64,000 nucleotides of DNA, taken from Eutreptiella sp. 'Long Island Sound 2002'. Lineage: Eukaryota > Protista > Euglenida. The position numbers and the translations under genes are program-made. Position 1 is the first letter of the stretch, and each line of letters starts with the position of its first letter. The notes beneath the pieces are model-generated. The model made no database searches. It was not told the DNA's origin and saw only the letters and a list, made by a program, of their open reading frames with translations. Of this stretch, positions 14,756 through 54,400 are shown piece after piece. The DNA lies in assembly GCA_964036045.1 (NCBI GenBank), contig OZ038378.1, positions 120,776,001 to 120,840,000 of the forward strand. Direction: 5' to 3'.

Positions 14756-14787
14756 TGGCGGAAGGGGGGCAGGGCGGAGGTTGGGGA

Positions 14788-14889
14788 ACCCGGCGCTCCG
14801 TGAGTGCGGTCCAGCATCGGGACCCTATGATTGGCCATAGCTGCCCATGGTAGCCGGGGCGGCTTCTCTTTGAAGAGTGGCGGAGCATT
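14788..14889 (-). repeat. 102-bp dispersed repeat containing GGCCAATCA (CCAAT box); inverted partner at 47390-47491
   Basis: Ungapped manual alignment shows 12 mismatches in 102 nt. Confidence 0.85.
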
Positions 14890-17444: not shown

Positions 17445-17670
17445 TTTTGCCAACCTTTCCAACAGGTTCCAAGAAGCTTGCAAACGCTTCCCCAACTTTC
17501 CCCGAAGTTTCCAAAAATTTCCCCAACTTTCCAAGAAGTGTCCAAACTTTTGCAAAAGTGTCCAAGAAGTCTCCAAACATTTCCTAAACCTTGCAACAAG
17601 TTTCTGACCTTTTCCAACTGGATGCGGAAGTTTCCACGATGGTTCCAAACGTTTCGAAGAACTTGCACGA
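17445..17670. repeat. ~11-bp periodic TTTCCAA-type repeat
   Basis: tttccaacag/ttccaagaag/tttccccaac/tttccaaaaa units. Confidence 0.65.
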
Positions 17671-19350: not shown

Positions 19351-19759
19351 TACTTTGTCGTGGACATACGGGGAATCAAGGAGACGGTGGTGCCGGTGGA
19401 GGCTTGTGCTATTCCCCCCTTCGGAGACCAGTGCGAACCCTGTGGGAAACCCTGCGTAGGCTGGATACCCAAGTATGAGGACGCCCCCCCCCCCCCCCCA
19501 CGCATACCGTCCTACGCTTCGTCCGCGTCCTACGTGTCGACTCCCGTCGCGGCTCTAGAACCACAAAAAATATCCTCCACATGATACACGTTCCTCATAT
19601 TGCAAACGTTTAGGCTTGATTTCCCGATGCCGCGCAGAACGTGTTGGTGGGGCTCTAGCAATAAATGGATGGTCCAAAGCCAAAGGAATGTGAACAAATG
19701 TCCTATTCTCCCCTCCCATACACCGCGGCAATTGCTTGTACAAGAACGCCCGCGTCATT

Positions 19760-20870
19760 GCTTAGTGCAACAACCGTAGTTCTTCTTCCAGCTCTGTCCC
19801 AAGCCCACCTTCCCGTGCACAGGCAACAAGAAAGAAGTTTTTTGGTATTGCATTCATGGATTCCACTACATCCCCAAAGAACATGGCCAATGGCCATGGC
19901 TTGATATTTTTCATAATGCGGCGTGCATTTTTTTGCAACCACAGGAAATACAATGAGCGCCCATTGGGCATGATGGCGGCATGGAAGCGCCTTGCTATCT
20001 TGCGGCATTTGAGGGTCTTCGCATTGAATTTGGTGCTATACATGTTACATAGCAAGCTGTACATCCCTGCCACTGCGTGGAGGGTCTCAGCGTCCACACA
20101 GAGGAGTTTGGACAATTTTGCCCATGGTTTTAGAAGGTTCCATGTCTCCTCACCACCCGGGGCGCCGACACCTCCGAAGCTCATCCCTATCTTTGACCGC
20201 CTCAGTACAACATTAATTTTCTTTGGCGTAACCCGCTTGAGTCTTTTTTGCCCGTCTCCTAATGAGCAACATCAAATACTTCCCCGTACACATAAGCAAG
20301 TTCAGGATACACAACACAACCAACATGTACCGGTCCCCAAGCTTGAGCACTGGTTTTGATACCCAACCCCCCATTGATGTCAATTTGTTTCCCTCGCGCT
20401 CTTTGTTGCGAATGGCCCTCCGGCACTTGAGAGACAGCTGCCGCTCCGTAGCCAGGGATCTTTCAACGTCAGTCTCCACCCATCTCTTCCCGTTCACCCA
20501 CATAGCATAGTTATTCAAGCCCCCAATTGTCCACGAAAGGGACAAACCGAATACATGATGGAGCCAACGGGAATCTGCTCCTACAATGGGACGGCATTTG
20601 CTGTATGCGCCACATATGTAGGTACAATGCTTTGTTGTCCAGAACCCATTGTAAGATTGTCAAGTTTACCCCCATGAGACGGCGAAGTACATCCCTCTCA
20701 TGCTCCGAGCACGATACCAAGTCTATTGTCTAATTAAAACCCACCGACCTTGCCAAGTCCATGTCATTGGCAACCCCGAGTGTAAGCTAACACCATGATT
20801 GGGCACCACACAAGTACCCATCTCCCCTGATTATGAGGACCATCTCCTCATCCTACCCAAGGAACTCCAT
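19760..20870 (-). mobile_element. Degenerate DDE transposase, Transib/RAG1/Chapaev-like (copy 1)
   Basis: VLIIRGDG (D1 ~20817-20831), CRPIVGADSRWL (D2 ~20570-20581), VVLCILNL (CxxH with H>N), GGEETWNLL and LAMFFGDVVESMN (E ~19860). Two frameshifts and several stops. Confidence 0.7.
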
Positions 20871-29911: not shown

Positions 29912-32900
29912 AAGGATTATGCAAGTTTACGTTTCTTACGCCAGAATTGCATAAACAAATCAAACCAGTTGCACCGCTCAGTGCATCACAATTTGTGCAT
30001 TTTGCTCGAACACCGTTCCAGACCGGCGCAGACCAGTCTTCGAACGAAGTGAAATTAACCGCTCGGTCCGGCCAGTTCGAGTAGTTCACCTCATTGTATA
30101 CTCTTCTTGGTGTGTTGCCTGTTGCAGAGGACTACTTGCGGAACATCACCAAGTGTAAGGTATGTGGTGTCAAGAAAGAAGAACAACCCCATGACTACCA
30201 TCCCTACTTCCCACCACACGAGCCAAGCTCCCCTTGTCCCGCCACGCGGCACAACCCCCTGACCAGCGCGAACCCGTGCCCCCCGTCCAAACCCATCCCA
30301 TTCAGGCAAGCGGTTCCTAGACCCACTCACACCCCGGCTTGCGGAGCTATCAGCTGCGGATGTGCGCCACCGGTACAAGTTGTTTTGACGTGAGCGTTGT
30401 CAGACGGAGCCGGAGTTGACTAAGGTACACCTTTGTGCCCTCCCGGCGTCAATTTTTCTTGTTCAATGGACCACGTCCCTTTATGCCCATAGGTGTGACC
30501 AAGGGAGCTGCCGGATGCCAGTTGAGAGGAACCCATGGAGATGACAAGGAGGGCCAAGGACCTCTGGGCGGAGATGTAGTCCGTCCCTTGGTTTGCCCGC
30601 CAATGGGAATGCATGGAGGAGGCAAAGGATAAATGGGCCTTGTGGAGGTTTGTTTTCGTATTTGTCACGGTTTGCGCTGTTGATCCAAAGACCAATCTAG
30701 ACCAGTCTTCGTGCCAACTGAAACATACTGTCCCGCTGCATCATTTCGATGTGTTTATACGGTTTGTCCACAGGTGGGCAAGAAGGCTTCCTGTGCTGTG
30801 CCATTGGTCACCCCCTGCCACCAAGGCGCCCATGTCTGGCAGAAGCGAAGGCATCGCGTACCCGGTGTTGTGGCCAACTAATGCACATTTGCACCACGCG
30901 TTGATGTGTGCAACGAGCTATGCCGGCAACACCGGGAGCAGCACGGGAAGGCCTTGAACGGCATGTTGCTGCGCATGGCATCTAGCAATGCATTCACCTC
31001 ATGCAAAGTGTAGAAACTTCGTGCGGAAACCATGCGCGGTTGCAGTGGCTCCTCATGCGGTACATCTTTTCAGCCCAAATAAGTGTCGTGCAAGCAAAGC
31101 ACCTTCCCATCCGTGCCAACCGTGGCACATGCATGTGCTGTCGGGGCCGCACATCGCTGTGGAAATGCCAAGGTTGTGGTGTTTTGTTGCACATTGATCG
31201 CTTTGCGGAGTACCATCAGTCCTGTTGAAGGATGGTCATATGTCAAGGGGGGAACTGCTCCATTGTGAAGGTCCCGCCGAAACTTACAGCTAACAACCCC
31301 GAATGCGGCCACCCCTCGACGGCTGTAGTTGGGCATGGAAGGCATTTGTATGTGGCACACACAGACAATCAGATGCAAGCACACAAATACACATACGCCA
31401 CATACACGCACGCACGCATACACACACACAAAAATGCTCTGAAGTGAAATGGATTGCGCAAATTGATCACATCGCTTGGTTTAAGGGGTGCCATGTAGTT
31501 GGTACAAAAACTAGACCACACAATAGAGACCTAAAGTTTATGGTTGGGGTCCGCCGCAACAAAGTTTCCGCACAAACCCTTCCCGTTTTCGGTACTACTA
31601 GAACCATATTGTGCACGCGTTTACGGTGCCTAATCAGTTGGGGATGGGATGGGGATGGGGATGAGTGGGGATGGAAGGCACCACCCTCTTCCTCGCAGGC
31701 CACAAGCCCACCAAGAAGAAGGCCGGGAAGGACAAGTACCCCTTCAAGCACACCCACCTGACACCCTCCGCAAAGTGGTGGACGGCAAACACGTCATGTC
31801 CCTCCCCATTTACTCCCTCGCAAGCCACTGTGTAGTGGAAACACTTCCGACTGGCAATCATGAAGCTCCTTGTAGAACTGTCCGTGCAGGCAAAAGCGGA
31901 TTTAAAGTCGGTGGTTATCAGACTGGAGGATGGTGGTTCTGGGAAGTCTACTGAGGACATTGTAGACGACGAAAGTCCAAGTCTCAGAATTATCCACGGC
32001 GGCACTTGCTACGGTGTACCAAGGGATGTGCTGGGCCTTCCATGCTGTGAGGTGTGTACTGCTTGTCATACTCATACTGTGTCTTTCGGGAAATGCATGC
32101 ATTGGGTGAACTTGTAGCAGCCGTTTGAACCATGCTACTGTAAACAACTAAACAGTGCGGCCTTGTGTCTACAGATCCTTGTAGAGGTTACTGGAGATAA
32201 ATGTGAGTCCATTCCCCCCTTGATGGGTAAGTATTTGCAGCCCGACGTACCTTTGGTGGCAACATGCACACATTTGGACATTCGGAATTTCAAGGCAGAG
32301 TGAACAAGACAGGAGGCAATGGACGGCTGGCATTATGTGGAGAGTACAATTTACGATCTGGGCACTTCGCACGCGGTGCACACCATTCGCTCATGTTCTG
32401 TGCTATTTGCCACACCAGTTAAATTTGCCAAAAAAGTTCCATCCTCTTTTTTGGGTCGACCACGGTCTGCTGAGCTCCAATATTACCCTGCCTGCTGCTG
32501 GTTATTTCCTTCAGAGTCTGGGCCTTGTACCTTCCGAAACACGCATGCCTGATGAGATGCCCTGGTCGTTAACATTTATGTCTGCACAGGCCTGGCAGCC
32601 CAACTTTTCCGTTCTTTGACTGAGTCTGTTTCATTGTCAGTCTGCTTCACTGGTATACCTGCCGCCTCTATTGCTTTTACACAGAGTGTTGCCAATTGCG
32701 TTAAGGACACTCACAGCCTTTACATTGCTGACGGGGAACGGTGGTCTGCTGATATTTGTGATGGTAGGAAGCTTAAGGTACTGACAGGTGAATCTTAGGA
32801 GGTGGATGATGATGATGATGATGGGGAGGATGTGGGGATGGAAACACCATCCAAGAAGCGGCCGAAGGCATCTGTAGCCGCCGGTACAGCTACCACTCCC

Positions 32901-45889: not shown

Positions 45890-46660
45890 GGTTTTAAGGC
45901 AATTGTCTTGACATTTCGCGACGATCGCCAGTGTGTGAAGTGGGCGTTTTCAATGATGGCCGTTTTTCTTTGGTAGCGATTGGGGTATCAAAGGAATGCT
46001 AACGGGTGTTCAATAAGGCATACACCATGCCGTCGTGCCACACGGTGGTCGGTTTTGGAGTCAACAGGAGCTTTTTTTGAGCCGTCTTTGAGCACTATCC
46101 TCCTGACTTTGGAGGAACTCTTCCAAAGCAAACATTTGGTGCCGCTCTTGGTAAGTGCTGCTGTGTGCTTTCTGGAGGTCTATTGATTTTGGCTTCCGAA
46201 ACACAACATTGCAAGGGTGATACACTCACGAGCGTAAAGATTTTCGAAGTCTCTCAAATGCAGCAATGACATTCGCCACCGAGGTCGGTCCTACTGTAAG
46301 TTGTCATTACCGAGCAGGGTTTACCTGTCGAGGCTTTACAACCCCACTCCGGGACTGAGGATGAGCAACACATTTTAGCAACAGCAAGCAGCAGCAAGCA
46401 GCAACAAGCAGGCAGATAACAAGTCTTTTTGTCGACACCGTGTCTCGAACGCGGCATGCAAAATGACCGTAGAGCAACTTCGCATCCAGAGAAGCACATT
46501 TTGTGCAATTCTGAGCCGTCTAGCCTGTTCTAGGGCCGGTTTAGTGGTCAAAACGGTCATTTTGAGACTGTTTTGAGGCAATTTTCAAGATGAACGTCCC
46601 GAAACTTCGGGACGATCACCAGTGTGTGAATTAAGTGTCTCAAATGCAACAATAACATCT
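45890..46660 (-). repeat. ~590-bp macrosatellite, left block (reverse orientation)
   Basis: Reverse anchor GAGCAACACATTTTAGC at ~46365 and GGTTTACCTGTCGAGG. Confidence 0.8.
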
Positions 46661-47389
46661 ACCTTTGGTACACGCTAGAAGCCCCAATCTTGTTCTAGCC
46701 TAGACGGCGCTAGAGGGCTAGAACGAAAAAAAGAGCCCCCCCCCCCCCTAGGGGGGATCTGAGGGTTGTAACTCGGACCCCCCTATCCGTACTCGGGGAC
46801 CCATGGATTTTTTTTCACAATTTCATCGTTTTCACCTGATGTTGGCGTCCAAAATTTTTTTCGTTCTAGCGACGTTTTAGCAACGTTCTAGCGAGCTCCG
46901 CTAGAGCGGCGCTAGAACGGTTCGCTAGAACGTCACTAGAACAATATATATAAACCCCCCCCCACTTATAACCCCCCCGGTGGTAGTAGCATTGCGGATT
47001 GGTTGAGGGTGCGGGGGGGTGGGTTATAAGTGGGGGGGGGGGTTATAAGTCCCTTCGTGGCATGGATCCAGACACATTTGCACCTTCAGACGTCATTCAT
47101 CATTTTGTAATGGAAATTGATTTGGACCTATCTTTGGGAGACACTGGTGGTGCTGCAGCTCCTGATGATGATGAGGTGGGGAAATTTTCAGATGAGGAGC
47201 TCGTGGACTTGCCTGAGGGGGATGAACAAGTATCAGATTCCCCATTATTGGCAATCCATCCGCTGGCACTTCTTGTTCTATGCGTGTGTGCTGAAAAAGG
47301 GGCGTTATAAGTCCCTGGGTGGCACGGATCTCCCGGGGGCTGGATTATAAGTGGGGGGGGTTATAAGTCGGGGGGGGGGGGGGGTTATG

Positions 47390-47491
47390 AATGCCCCGCC
47401 ACTCCTCAAAGAGAAGCTTCCCCGGCTACCATCGCCAGCCGTGGCCAATCACAGGGTGCCGATGCTGGACCCCACTCACAGAGCGCCGGGT
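47390..47491 (+). repeat. 102-bp CCAAT-containing dispersed repeat (partner at 14788-14889)
   Basis: ~88% ungapped identity by manual count. Confidence 0.85.
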
Positions 47492-47559
47492 CCCCCCCCC
47501 ACCGCAGGATTAGCCCGGTTAGCCCCCCACCCCACCCCATAGGTCACATGGAAGGTCAC

Positions 47560-48629
47560 TTGGCGGGCCGGCGCCAGCTCACTTGGTGGTGGCGCAGCCC
47601 GATTAGCCCGGTTAGCCGGATTAGCCCCCGTGCCCCCCAAGGCCCCCTTTCGCGAGTTGCGACACACATGTTACCCCTCCTCAAGGGGGGGGGGGGGTTG
47701 CCGGGGTGCATCTTTGCTCCGGGCGCCCCCCTTCTCACCCCCCGTGTCCCCTTCCGTCTCACCCCCCTTGTCAATCCCCACCTCACCCCCCTTCTCACAC
47801 CCCTCCCCCTTGTCGCCACCCTCCTCCCCCTCGTCATCCCCATCATCCCCGTCGTCTCCGTCGTCTCGCTCCCTCAAGGCCTCCCAGAGGTGGGCCTCCG
47901 CTTCCTCCCGGGTGCAGAAGAGGAGCTCCCCCAGCACCCGGAAGCTGCCCCCCTCTTTCTCCTGCTTCCTCCTCTTCCCTTTCTTTCCCCGCTCCCCATT
48001 AGACCCCTGCGACACTACCCAACAGTCCCGCAGGTCCAACTCCTCATCCCCATCCCCCACCGCCGTCACTTGGCTAACGGTCCCCCCATTGCCCCCCTCC
48101 CTCCAAGGGACATACCGGGTGTCCCCCACACCTGCCAGATTCCCATAGGGTTCCCGGCCCCTATTCTCCAGGGGAGGGGCTTGGGGTTCCGGGGGGTGCT
48201 TAGCCTTGCCCTTGCCCTTAGCCTTGTGCTTGGCCTTGGGTTTGGTCTGGGCTTCGGGTGGGGGGGGGGGGGCTCTTCGTCGCTACTCTCGAACTCGCGG
48301 GGCTTCTTCTTGGGGGCCTTGGGCGGGGTTGGGGTTTGGGGGTTTTGGCGTGGGGTATCCTCTCCACGCTGGTGCGGCTCCTCTTGCTGCTGCTGCTGCC
48401 GGTATCCCCTCCCCCCTCCTCCACCCTCACTCAACCCTTGCGCCGCAATTCCATGCTTCCCCCCCCCGACTCCTGCCCGCCTCCCACCTACCCCACCCGT
48501 GTAGCACTGAGAGGGCCGAATGGGGGTCATTCCCCACCATCCGGCCCAACTTAGTGACCCCCCACGAGGTGCGTCCGGCCTCCGCCATCGCGCCACTCCA
48601 CCGGCACCCCGCGGGGGTCGGCTCCACAC
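47560..48629 (-). pseudogene. Frameshifted accessory ORF (Pro/Lys-rich, small beta-rich segment, acidic Gly/Asp/Glu tail)
   Basis: PKAPKKKPREFESSDEE..(fs)..GDTRYVPWREG..DLRDCWVVS..LLFCTREEAEAHLWEALRERDDGDD. Confidence 0.4.
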
Positions 48630-48789
48630 GTCTGCACGCTCAAAACCTCAGAACAGAAACAAGAGGTAGGTGTGTTCTAGGTGCGTTCTAGGCAAAAGTT
48701 CGAGCGATGTTCTAGCGAAGATCTAGCGGCGACGGTGGGTAGATCAAAGCTAGAACGGTTCGCTAGATCAACGCTAGAACACAATGAAC

Positions 48790-50085
48790 ATACCGTGCCT
48801 TGCCGGTCAAGGGCAGGGGGGATGGCCCCTAGGGCTTTGGCGAAGGCCTCCGGGGGGTTGGTGGGGTTAGGCTGCGGGGGGGCCTCCAGTTGCGGGGATT
48901 GCGGGGGGCTTGGGCTTGGACTTGGGGCGGGAGAGACGATGCCGTGCACCAATCCGGCATACGCCCCCTGTTTGCCCGCCGCCGGGTCGAACCCACCCAT
49001 CTTCATGATCGCCCACCACGTCGGCGACCACATCCATGTCCTCCCCGCAAACTCCATCCCCCCCAGTGCCTGCGCCTGCCAACACATCGCCAGTTGCTCG
49101 CCCCCCCCTCCTTTTTCACCTCGGGGGTGAAGTGGTTGAGTTGGGCCAACTCAAACATCTTCACCCCCCACTTCCGCCCGGGCAACTCCCGCTGCCACCA
49201 CCACCACCCTGGGACCCCCCCCACCCGCAGGGGCTTGTCCTGGTGGACCCCCCCTCCGGGTCCACCCATACCCACCTCCCGTGCCCCAAAATTCTTTGAT
49301 GCACCCGCCGCATCAAAAAATGGAGAATCGAAACCAAACTCTCCGGGGGAAGAGGAGGGGGTGGTCCAAGTTTGGGCCCTAGGTGCCAGCCAAGACGGCC
49401 TGGTCCCATGGCACGTCCTGGATGGCCTCCGCCTCCCTCGTCCCCAAAAAACCCCCCAGCCACTGCCCTGCCCCCACAGCTTTCTCCTCCACCACCTTCT
49501 CCTCCACCTCCTATTTCAATGTCTCCTCCACCATCTCCTCCACCTCGACCTCTAGCACCTCATCCTCCACCACCTCCTTCACCTTTGCCTCCATCGCCAC
49601 GATCCCCTCCAGCCTCCTGACGCTCCTCTCCAGTTGGAGGATGTCCTTCTCCTTTTCCTTCAGCTTCTCCTTCTCCCTCGCCTTCCCGAGCCAAGCGACG
49701 GCCCAAGTCTCCTGCTGTGCATCCGCTTGGGCGCGCAACGCTTCCACCTTGGCCTCCAACCCACCACCCTCACCTCCGCCTTGGCCTTCGCCCCCTTTTG
49801 CGCCGCAATGAAACAGGAGAGAATTGGCAGCTCTTCACGCAGCTCCTCCCGCTCCGCATCCTCCGCCTTGATAATTTCTTGGCGGCCAACGGGTGAGAGG
49901 GTGGCAACGGGGGATGTTGGGCTTGGGTTTGGTGCTTCGGCTTGGGCTTGGGCTTGGCGAGAGGCGGTAGCTTGGGCTTGGCGTGGGCCGCGGGCTTGGG
50001 CTTGGTCTCGGCCTCGGCCTGGGGCTTGGCCTCGGCCTGCTGGCGCATCTCCTCGGCCAACAACTGCGCGGTATGGCGTTGCCAA
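48790..50085 (-). pseudogene. Frameshifted accessory ORF with coiled coil
   Basis: EIIKAEDAEREELREEL..EAKVEALRAQADAQQETW..KEKEKDILQLERSVRRLEG. Confidence 0.45.
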
Positions 50086-50459
50086 AACAAAGAGCGTAGC
50101 AGCGTTCTAGCGGCGTTCTAGGCAACCGTTCTAGTGGCGTTCTAGCGACGTTCTAGCGACTGATCATGCATCCTCGATCAACGCTAGAACGCTTCCCTAG
50201 ATCATTGCGCCAACGCACGATTAAATTCCCCTTCCAACATATGCTCGATCAAATCCTCCTGGGCGGTTATGTTGCTGATGCGGAAGAGTCTTTTCAAGGG
50301 AAGCCTGCATGTGGCCTTGGCCCCTCCTTACCACCATGGCATCCCTGCCCGAGCATGGCACTTAGGACCGGGGCCCCCCGTGCACAACCCATGACACTTT
50401 GAAGTCTGCAAACAGCCATGCCATGCACTGTGCTTGCACACCGGCCTCCCTGTGGATGC

Positions 50460-51330
50460 CTAACCACTTATGACCTGATACCTCGTCCACCGCCTCCACC
50501 CGATAGCCCCCCCCCCCCCCGGATTGCTATGCTCGTTATCACCATGTTTCAGAAAGCGGTTGATGCTTTCTGAAATGTCACCCGAGAACATGGCCAACCC
50601 GAATGGCTTAATGTTGTGCATCATGGCATCTACATCATGCTCCAGGCTCAATAGATACCATGATGCCGTATCAGCAGTACAGTGCCGCCCGAAATCCCTT
50701 GCCACGGCGGCACGATTCCATGGGTTAGGGCCCTCATATGTACAATAGAGGGCCTCTAGCAGGTCCCACAAGTGTGCGATGGCCTTGTACTGCGCCGTGC
50801 TTGGCCTAATGCCGAGGCACCTAGCAATATCCGGCCATGCCTCAACAAAATTGGCCGTTTCTTCCCCGTTCGGGGAAGCTGACCCATAAACGCTCCAACT
50901 TGCACGCCTCTCCGACAGGAGAACTTGCACGTCTTGACGGAGCGGAGGGGTAACCTCCTAGCCTCCCGGTCGACAAACTCCCCCAACAAGCGGCCTATGG
51001 CCATTGTCAAGTGCAAAATGTACAAGACGACCCAGGCACGTGACAATTGCAAAATCCGCTGTGTACTGCAGCAAGCGGCTTGCAAAAAAGGCGTCCCAAG
51101 GAGGAAGGCCGTCTACTGGGCCTCATTACCCCCCATGGTCCGCGGGATGGCACTACCCTCCCAAGTTTTCTTTTGGGCATTCCATATCCCGCATGGAACA
51201 TGGAGTCCACTTGGGGGTATATGGACACGCCGATCACCCTTCGTATCCACAATTGATCCCCCCCTCGAGGAACACCGTTGCCTCATCCTCCGAGGCCCCC
51301 CATTAGACAAGCTCTGTGCCAATGAGCTCT
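50460..51330 (-). mobile_element. Degenerate DDE transposase, paralog of copy 1 (copy 2; D1 region not seen)
   Basis: IWNAQKKTW..PRTM, RAWVVLYILHLTMAIGR, SPNGEETANFVEAW and HNIKPFGLAMFSGDISESINRFLK align colinearly with copy 1 (MWVNGKRW..RSL, VVLCILNLLMCTGK, PGGEETWNLL, KNIKPWPLAMFFGDVVESMN). Confidence 0.72.
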
Positions 51331-51479
51331 TGAATCACCTAATCACGAGACATGGGGGGTTGTTCATTTCGTTGTAGTCTAGTCTCGCCTACCTTCTAGC
51401 GACGGGTGTCCGAGGCTGACTAGATCAAAACTAGAACGAGTGAAAGGCAATAGGTGAGAGGAGTACCTCCCAACTGCTC

Positions 51480-54400
51480 TTCTGCATCTAGAGAAACCGG
51501 TGTCGTGCCCTTCTGACCTTTCTAGCCCGTTCTATGGCCGATTTAGTGGTCAAAGATGGCCATTTTTAGGCTGCTTTGGAGGCACCTTTCAGGACGATCG
51601 TCCTAAAGGTTTAGGACGATCGCCAGTCTGTCAAGAAGGTGTGTGAAATGAAGTAAAAACATCTACTAGCCAGCTCAGTCCTCGTCGTGAGTCCTGATTA
51701 CGGAGCTGGGTTTACCCTGTCGAGGTTTTACACCCCTTCTTAGGGTCCAAGGGTGAGCAACACATTTTAGCATCAGCAAGCACCAGCAACAGCACCAAGC
51801 AGCAGCATCAGCAGCAACAAGCGATTAAAAAGGCCTTGCGACGACACCGTGGCTCCAGAGCGGCATTGAAGTAGCTCAAAACGACCGGGGAGCAAACCTG
51901 CATCACCAGAAACAAGTTTCGTGCCGTGTCGAGCCGTCTTATGCCAAGCCTTATTCAAGACCCGTGTGCATCCCTTTGATAGCCCATTCGCAATGAAAGA
52001 CGAATGGCCCTTATGGAAAACGCCCACTTGACACACCGGCGATCACCCTGAACTCTCGGGGAGATCGTCTTGAAAACCGCCCCAAAACGGCAATTAATGA
52101 ACGATAAAACGGCTGTAGAACAGGCTAGACGGCTCAAAAGAATACAACACTTGTTGCAAGTGATGCGCATTTCCTCTGCTGTCGTTTTGAGCTCCTTGGA
52201 TGCCGGTTTTGGACACACAATGCCGTCGAAAGGAGTTTTCGTGTGTCCGCTGCATGCTGCTTGATGCTTGCTACTGCTGCTTGCTAAAATGTGTTGCTCA
52301 TCCTTGGGCCCTGAAGAGGGGTGTAAAGCCTCGATAGGGTAAACCCAGCTCGGTGATCAAGATGCAAATCAGGACCGAGATGGGTCCTAGTTTTGCGTAA
52401 CACATTGGAAATCACCGTCCAAGAAAGACCGCTTGATTTGAAGATGTGCTTCCATGGTTAGGACATTTTTCCTAAAACGCGGCTCTAAAACAGCTCATTT
52501 TCAGATCAAAAGGAACCACGGTGTGGCCTCAGGGCATGGTACGCTAATTTGCATTCCTTTTATAGCCCAATCGCTATGCAAGAAGAATGGCCCTTATGGA
52601 AAACGTCCATTTGACACACCGGCGATTGTCCTCAACTTTCAAGGTGATCGTCCTGAAAACAGCCCCAAACGGGCCCTTGTTGGACACTAAAACAGTCGTA
52701 GAACATGCTAGACGGCTCAAAATAACACAAAATCTGTTGCAAGTGATGCGCACTTGCTGCACGGTCCTTTTCAGCTACTTGCAACCCCGGTTTTGAGCAA
52801 CAATGCCGTCGAAAGGAGTTTCTTGCGTTTGCTGCTGCCTGCGGCTTGCTGCTGCTTGCGGCTCGCTGCCCCTTGCTGTTACTTGCTAAAATGTGTGGTC
52901 CACCTTTGGACCCTAGGAAGGGGTGTAAAACCTCGACCGGGTGAACCCAGCTCGGTAATCAAGACTCAAACTAGGACCGAGCTGAATCCTAGTCTTGCGT
53001 AACACATTGGAAATCGCCGCGGAAGAAAGGCCGCTTGCTTTGCACATGTGCTGCCACGGTTAGGACGATTTTATTGAATCCCGCCTCAACAACAGCTCCT
53101 TTTCACCGCAAAATGGACCACGGTGTGGCATCATGGCATGGTACATGCCTTATTGGTCACCGATTTGCATTCTTTAGATACCCCAATCGCTATGGAAGAA
53201 CAACGGCCCTCATTGCAAACACCCACTTGACACACCGGCGATCGTCCGGAACTTTTACGACGATGGTCCTGGAAACAGCCCAAAAACGGCCATTTTTGTA
53301 CACAAAATCGGCCATACAACAGGCTACACGCCTCGAAACGGCACAAAACTTGTTTCTGGTGATGAGCCTTCGCTCCCCGGTCGCTGTGAGGTACTTGGAT
53401 GCCGGTTTTGAGCCACGTCGTTACAAGGTGTTTTGGACTGCCTGTTGTTGAACTAGTCTTTTTTCCACGGGGGTTTCCAATGCCTTACACAAGACTAGGA
53501 CCTAGCTCGGTCCTAGTTTGAGTCTTGATTACTGAGCTAGGTTTACCCTGTCGAGGTTTTACACCCCTTCTTAGGGTCCAAGGATGAGCTACACATTTTA
53601 GCAAGTAGCATCAGCAACAGGAGCAAGCAGCAATGTCTTGCAAATGTGCTTCCACGCTTGGGACGATCGTCCTCAAACACGCCTTTAAAACTGCTCATTT
53701 TCACGTGGAAACGGACCATCGTGTGGCACCGCGGCATGGCACATTCCTGATTGAACACACATTTGCCATCTTTTGGTCGCCCAATTGCTATGAAAGAACC
53801 ACCGCCCTGATGGGAAACACCTACTCAGCACAGCGGCGATCGTCCTGAAGACAATCGTCGTTTCAAGACAATAGTCCTGAAAAGAGCCCCAAAAAGGCCA
53901 TTTTTGGATACTAAATCGGCCATAGAACAGGCGAGACGGCCCGCAACGGCACAAAACTTGTTTGTGGTGATGCGCATCCGCTCCCCGGTCTTTTTAAGGT
54001 ATTTGGATGCCGGTATTGAGCCACGGTGTCGTCGCGTCCTAGTCTTGTGTAACGCGTTGGGAATGACCGTGGAAGAAAGCCCACTTGCTTTGCAGATGTG
54101 CTTCCACACTCAGGACAATCGTCGTGAAACACGGCTTTAAAACAGCCCAGTTTCACCTCAAAATGGACCACCGCGTGGCGCCATGGCATGGTACATTCCT
54201 GATTGCACACCCATTTGTCATCATTTGATAGACCAATCGTTGTGAAAGAACAACGGGCCTCATCGGAAACACCTACTCGGCACATCGGCGATCGTCCTGA
54301 ACTTTCGGGACAATCCTCCTGAAAACAGCCCCAAAAGGGCCATTTTTGGACTCCAAATCGGCCATAGAACGGGCTAGACTGCTTCAAACGGCACAACATG

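Follow-up and report, generated by a model that had tools for sequence, protein, structure and literature searches.

A 64,000-nucleotide stretch of the Eutreptiella sp. 'Long Island Sound 2002' genome (contig OZ038378.1, positions 120,776,001 to 120,840,000; called the window below, and counted from its own first letter) contains one dead copy of a DNA transposon. The element, which we call family F1, is about 5.4 kb long, has terminal inverted repeats (TIRs) and codes on the minus strand. A full-length copy of it measures 5.37 kb and carries two genes. The window copy is frameshifted, holds a nested insertion and is truncated at 51482, so that the last ~970 bp, comprising the bulk of exon A together with the promoter side and right TIR, are missing; no further match to this missing part was found anywhere in the window. 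Arrays of a short motif, GTTCTAG, lie at the left end of the element and inside its introns, and these arrays are the main subject of this study.

To collect related copies, the 2.28-Gb genome was searched at the DNA level with 46660-51460 as the query, which gave 125 scored matches out of 3,607 candidates of a loose first look, and 30 F1 loci were fetched out of the scored matches. Compared with 29 other copies (75-86% identity), the limits of the window copy are sharp at both 46660 and 51482. Full-length copies have inverted repeats of about 45 bp at both ends, starting (TA)CCYTTGGTACAC, and these termini were read in 13 copies. The dinucleotide outside CCYTTGG was identical on both sides in 8 of the 9 evaluable copies. 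It was TA in most of them, with CC/CC in L005 and TG/TG in L010 and L012. The target duplication is therefore 2 bp, with TA preferred.

The initial annotation had described three co-oriented open reading frame (ORF) remnants, one of them a DDE transposase, as separate genes bracketed by the arrays. The frames are real, lie together on the minus strand and include a DDE-type transposase. The units between the arrays are, however, exons rather than genes, because the arrays lie inside GT..AG introns. The introns were called from an alignment of 14 F1 copies by conserved GT..AG boundaries and reading frames. The three remnants are exons B, C and D of two co-oriented genes (Table 1): gene 1, the DDE transposase, has two exons (A and B), and gene 2 has a short first exon followed by two long exons. 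Clusters 4, 3 and 2 lie wholly within introns 1, 2 and 3, and cluster 1 corresponds to the left TIR and the subterminal hairpin.

Exon A encodes the N-terminal half of the transposase with the first catalytic Asp. Intron 1 splits the protein between this residue (RGDAYPVAGG) and the second Asp (GGDQPW), and the two exons are read in different frames, exon A up to ..LWKSNWE and exon B from VIQDIIDTGL.. onwards. A natural intronless homolog, P0116, is continuous across the exon A/B junction (LWQHNLSAIQAIIDGHAL), which shows that intron 1 is real. In gene 2, the short ATG exon joins exon C in phase 0 across intron 2, and exon D continues the frame of exon C beyond intron 3, with phase 0 on both sides. 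The short exon overlaps the 3' tail of the transposase frame. In the window copy its start codon reads ATA, and both splice sites of intron 2 are mutated. The start of gene 2 and the expression mode of both genes are inferred from frames and splice signals. Long ORFs of 320-470 aa on the plus strand were rejected as products of the C-rich composition.

Table 1. Features of the F1 copy in the window
Feature	Position	Strand	Basis
Decayed, truncated F1 copy	46660-51482	-	Boundaries against 29 copies; full length from L002:1202-6573
Left TIR, ~45 bp (begins (TA)CCYTTGGTACAC), with first three motif sites	46660-46725		Inverted match to right ends of full-length copies
Left subterminal fold-back array 3' of gene 2; 3 forward sites followed by 4 reverse	46863-46942		Sites conserved in copies
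Nested insertion, unrelated small element	46967-47385		Absent from all other copies
Exon D, last of gene 2; acidic low-complexity tail; stop codon 47671-47673	47671-48632	-	ORF; tblastn of L015 exon D, 51% identity
Intron 3, almost all cluster 2: 5 forward sites then 4 reverse CTAG cores	48633-48794	-	ACG|GTATGT and GTGCAG|ACG conserved
Exon C of gene 2; coiled-coil region, then conserved domain (W-L/M-R/Q..G..PW)	48795-50082	-	Open in best copies (L015, 391 aa)
Intron 2, holds cluster 3	50083-50229	-	CAG|GTATTT and YAG at same columns in other copies
First exon of gene 2, 13-14 codons (inferred)	50230-50271	-	ATG plus 12-13 codons, then 5' splice site, in both subfamilies and L038
Exon B of transposase; second catalytic Asp (GGDQPW), C.LH motif, catalytic Glu (ES.NR.LK)	50230-51339	-	ORF 50460-50930; invariant residues in alignment
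Intron 1, holds cluster 4	51340-51467	-	GAG|GTACTC and GTTTAG|GTG conserved in all copies; frame switch
Last 15 nt of exon A	51468-51482	-	Alignment to full-length copies ends at 51482

Motif arrays and termini in three families

GTTCTAG is about 7-fold enriched in the window, with 28 sites on both strands versus 3.9 ± 2.0 in shuffled sequences. Nineteen of the 28 sites fall inside 46692-51437, where they form four clusters, and in every cluster the GTTCTAG copies precede the CTAGAAC copies. The spacing between same-orientation neighbours was measured in 14 family copies. It was 11 bp in 129 of 251 cases, 13 bp in 44, and 22, 24 or 25 bp in 47. The clusters, their forward-then-reverse order and the 11-bp phasing reported by the initial annotation were thus all confirmed, 11 bp being the commonest step. 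The forward arms of clusters 2 and 3 both run in steps of 11, 13, 11 and 11. The subterminal repeat unit of F1 is CGTTCTAGCGR, about 11 bp long, and the motifs occupy conserved columns in the alignment of the 14 copies.

It had also been proposed that each cluster can fold back on itself, and this holds for only part of them. RNA folding of the left hairpin (46855-46950) gave -53.4 kcal/mol with a z-score of -9.0, and cluster 2 in intron 3 reached a z-score of -5.65. In contrast, the values for cluster 3 in intron 2 (-1.83) and cluster 4 in intron 1 (-0.95) of the window copy were weak. The array arms are unequal (5 sites versus 2-4) and differ in their site variants. When the arrays of F1 and its two sister families F2 and F3 (introduced below) were considered together, hairpin strength ranged from a z-score of +0.7 to one of -15.4, the latter in intron 2 of F2, whose array is a near-perfect hairpin of -111 kcal/mol. 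With such a range of hairpin strength, the constant feature is the site array tracking the termini, not the stem.

Introns 2 and 3 of F1 are paralogous over the whole array, with 75-80% identity. This homology ends 10-25 nt before the splice sites, so the arrays occupy nearly the whole intron, and the comparison of the two introns revealed no duplication flanking the modules. Between two subfamilies, cluster 3 shows 81-86% identity versus 49-70% in the adjoining coding sequence. The terminal motif CCYTTGGTAC is restricted to the ends of the element, and the internal arrays are without it.

Two sister families are present in the same genome. The F2 transposase (P0073 type) is 40% identical to that of F1, and the F3 transposase (P0082 type) is 31% identical; loose first-look searches gave 26,921 candidate matches for F2 and 7,376 for F3. 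Exons A and B are homologous across the three families, intron 1 is at the same codon in all of them, before (V/A)(I/L)Q, and the conserved domain of exon C is recognisable in F2 and F3 also. Both sister families retain the terminus GTACC(A/C)(A/G)GG. The F2 end is ..GCGTACCAAGGGT, and GTTCC[GA]G is the basis of its subterminal unit. Arrays of this unit are found in F2 introns 1 and 2, with the same forward-arm spacing of 11, 13, 11 and 11 as in F1. The F3 end is ..CGTACCCGAGG; here GTTTAAA is the motif of the right subterminal region and of the three introns that were seen. None of the motifs was found outside its own family, and within it each is limited to termini and introns and absent from the exons. 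Arrays are carried by 3 of 3 introns in F1, 2 of 2 in F2 and 3 of 3 in F3. Since the introns and ends of F2 and F3 are filled with motifs of their own, intron arrays and termini vary together across the three families.

The link between the two genes also appears to differ among the families. In F3 (L035:1460-1560 and 1300-1320), the frame of the transposase runs up to the donor site of intron 2, which it meets in phase 1, and splicing there would continue it in frame into gene 2, whereas in F1 only the short ATG exon fits such a splice. The families may differ in how they express the two genes.

Transposase relatives and known systems

The exons were searched separately. No Pfam family was matched at E <= 0.1 by the exons or long ORFs of both strands, nor at E <= 0.01 by ten homologs. 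A word search with exon B found 91 unnamed proteins, and a profile search of 1.84 billion proteins found 762 homologous clusters, all unnamed and mostly fragments. Exon B modelled alone gave a poor predicted local distance difference test score (pLDDT 50), and this model was not used. The AlphaFold (AF2) model of P0116, built from a 29-sequence alignment, reached a pLDDT of 79. Its top 40+ Foldseek matches were RAG1, RAG1L and Transib, with Hermes far behind; RAG1 itself was matched with an E value of 1e-9 and a template-modelling (TM) score of about 0.5, followed by amphioxus RAG1-like and HzTransib. In this model, the transposase homolog thus has a RAG1/Transib-like fold. A sequence-profile search of the PDB also ranked RAG1L best, but non-significantly (E 0.064), and the ESM Atlas pointed weakly to RAG1 for exon B (0.93; 154 features shared) and had no match for the gene 2 protein.

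A relative without intron 1 lies in the window itself. At 19714-20846 on the minus strand, there is a frameshifted transposase of the same superfamily, closest to P0116, which is continuous at the position that intron 1 has in F1-F3. About 2 kb from it, at 17504-17657, AGT(G/T)TCCAA-like units are repeated in alternating steps of 20 and 11 bp, and this may be the subterminal array of the intronless copy.

The predicted catalytic fold is the likeness of P0116 to Transib and RAG1. Unlike them, F1 has no 5-bp duplication and no heptamer-like CACAGTG (CACNNTG) terminus, and no significant sequence match to RAG1/Transib models was obtained. A parallel for the arrays is found in CACTA elements. In En/Spm, 12-bp subterminal sites are bound by the element-encoded TnpA. 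En/Spm of maize and related plant CACTA elements share with F1 the TIR and a subterminal motif of about 12 bp in many copies and both orientations; they also express a transposase and a second, motif-binding protein from one co-oriented, alternatively spliced unit, with which the two co-oriented genes that frames and splice sites suggest for F1 may be comparable. Such motifs diverge between CACTA families, as in a soybean case (PMC2613891). F1 differs from CACTA in that its TIR starts (TA)CCYTTGGTAC and not CACTA/CACTG, that its duplication is 2 bp with no 3-bp repeat present, that no CACTA transposase Pfam family matches, and that all its introns are filled with motif arrays as well. F1 therefore agrees with neither Transib nor CACTA in its termini and its 2-bp duplication. 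The length of this duplication would fit Mirage of the CMC supergroup, and the transposase motif D.P.....G.S may resemble that of CMC transposases.

Two further systems are comparable in the placement of repeats. Introner elements of algae, dinoflagellates and fungi are, like the F1 modules, short inverted-repeat-type modules that form nearly a whole intron. The F1 modules differ from them because, in the 12 places sampled, they occur only in F1, its deletion derivatives and non-autonomous relatives and not in host genes; the repeated part does not extend to the splice sites, and a flanking duplication is absent. P elements and inverted repeat-direct repeat (IR-DR) Tc1-like elements have internal transposase-binding repeats that modulate transposition. 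The F1 arrays resemble these in being extra internal sites away from the cleaved termini. However, the P and IR-DR sites are within a few hundred bp of the ends, whereas the F1 arrays occur every 1.0-1.5 kb, in introns, across the coding body.

Possible roles of the arrays

Protein binding is the best reading of the arrays, given that they vary in step with the termini in all three families. We consider it somewhat more probable than the alternatives combined that the arrays are phased binding sites, placed in introns, for a sequence-specific protein encoded by the element. This protein would be the N-terminal part of the transposase or the gene 2 product, and the introns would be the only sites in the coding body able to hold arrays without damage to the proteins. 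With an array every 1.0-1.5 kb, the bound protein could zip the element together and pair its distant ends. Alternatively, it could feed back on its own transcription or splicing when bound to the arrays. The arrays are very probably neither cut sites nor bounds of mobile cassettes. Of the two roles that the initial annotation had offered, phased protein binding or recombination, the first is thus retained on the strength of the sequence comparison and the second is not.

A broader proposal, which we hold more tentatively and at slightly less than even chance, is that this lineage uses its own introns as cis-acting modules for transposition or regulation. Every intron would be an array of the end-marking unit, which would co-evolve with the binding specificity across the families (CTAG, CCGG and TTAAA cores); splicing would keep the sites out of the proteins, whereas the DNA would retain them. 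In a variant of this proposal, the hairpin module of the element may have served as the material for its introns.

Arrays of subterminal binding sites are well known from CACTA, hAT and P elements, where they are regarded as end structures. In the literature searched, the coverage of which is incomplete, no description of intron-borne subterminal repeats or of the motif and terminus strings was found. In F1-F3, every intron is filled by such arrays, whose positions are orthologous and whose motif follows that of the termini in each of the three families. Binding of the arrays by the element's protein, if it occurs, would give the introns of a mobile element a definite function in cis and provide three natural pairs of motif and protein for specificity-swap experiments. 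The transposase belongs to a large family without a Pfam model, and the RAG1/Transib-like fold predicted for its homolog makes it of interest for the history of that fold.

Several points weigh against the binding-site explanation. Some arrays are near-perfect hairpins, as in F2 intron 2, and may therefore act as RNA or single-strand DNA. Gene conversion between termini and introns could yield the co-variation without any function. The F3 transposase frame appears to be spliced in frame into gene 2. The evidence from the sister families comes from two loci for F2 (L033, L034) and one for F3 (L035), none of which includes a left end. In addition, neither Pfam nor the ESM Atlas recognised a DNA-binding domain in the transposase or the gene 2 protein.

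The strong folds raise the question of whether the arrays work as hairpins in RNA or single-strand DNA. They could fold in the pre-mRNA and bring splice sites together, or be diced into regulatory small RNAs, with the match to the termini being secondary. The constant forward-then-reverse order, the extension of the arrays over almost the whole intron and the z-scores of the left hairpin, F1 intron 3 and F2 intron 2 are consistent with such a role. However, 5 of 11 folds were no better than shuffles (z-scores of -1.2 to +0.7) and two more were marginal (-1.8 and -1.9). The unequal arms with their different site variants also argue against it, and a need for structure alone would not make the introns track the terminal motif in three families. 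We therefore regard a hairpin role as unlikely. Somewhat better placed, yet still improbable in our view, is the possibility that the arrays are by-products without present function: the introns would have arisen from a self-inserted, introner-like hairpin module, or terminal arrays would have been copied in during repair, and gene conversion would keep them alike. This could explain the identity of introns 2 and 3 over the whole array and the presence of the same hairpin module at the left end of the element and of its non-autonomous relatives. Relatives without intron 1 exist (P0116 and the copy at 19714-20846), and the breakpoints of two deletion derivatives within cluster 3 suggest repair activity at that place. 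In contrast, every intron seen in F1-F3 has an array, and the coding sequence around cluster 3 is less conserved than the cluster itself. As intron 1 occupies a single orthologous position, the arrays have persisted since the three families diverged, down to 31-40% protein identity. The modules are also without flanking duplication, and the splice sites lie outside the repeated part.

The initial annotation had interpreted the arrays as sites of recombination or excision that would turn every ORF into a separable cassette open to reshuffling. It is true that arrays flank every long ORF and that, among the deletion junctions examined, two fall within cluster 3. Nevertheless, none of the 30 copies departs from the common order of modules, and the terminal motif is missing from the internal arrays; the idea of separable cassettes is therefore unsupported. 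Deletions did not run from cluster to cluster; their breakpoints were mostly away from the arrays, with 2 of the 4 junctions read falling inside cluster 3. Moreover, one of the supposed cassette boundaries, in intron 1, bisects the catalytic domain of the transposase. We consider this model very improbable. The opposite concern, that the clusters are an independent repeat spread over the genome, was not borne out by the sites sampled either. A genome-wide pattern search found 767 triple-phased sites, a count that proves nothing alone because the reversed control was also high (262 and 900). All 12 other array sites sampled were F1 copies, deletion derivatives or non-autonomous relatives; besides the fetched copies, the census rests on this small sample.

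Derivatives, relatives and neighbouring repeats

In two internally deleted copies, L037 and L038, one breakpoint lies inside the cluster-3 array, and the arrays may be fragile during repair. Locus L031 (G000:C1:117380000-117384000) is a tandem array with a period of 1,489 bp and 97-98% identity between units. In each unit the left end is joined to part of exon C and continues through cluster 3 into exon B. It was considered as a cluster-to-cluster unit and rejected, since it is a rearranged deletion derivative. Exact matches to the terminus at 32016 and 32992 were dropped, being without arrays.

The ~290-bp left end of F1, which comprises the TIR, C/G runs and the hairpin, is also used by non-autonomous relatives. 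L040-L043 share only this part with F1, have unrelated TG-rich interiors and are probably such relatives. Between the left TIR and the hairpin (46726-46760), a C-run is followed directly by a G-run in nearly all copies, with variable run lengths. The nested insertion of about 420 bp is private to the window copy. At its inverted ends a C-run precedes ACTTATAA, and its interior holds repeated TTATAAGT boxes; the insertion resembles a short non-autonomous element from a different family.

The flanks of the window copy (46240-46660 and 51483-52400) consist of a dispersed repeat unit of about 400 bp in direct and inverted orientation, and at 51692/52282 this repeat forms 81-nt arms that are 88% complementary. 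The F1 element breaks off at 51482, precisely at the start of one such unit. An isolated 106-bp F1 fragment of 86% identity, from the region adjoining the left hairpin, lies at 14783-14888.

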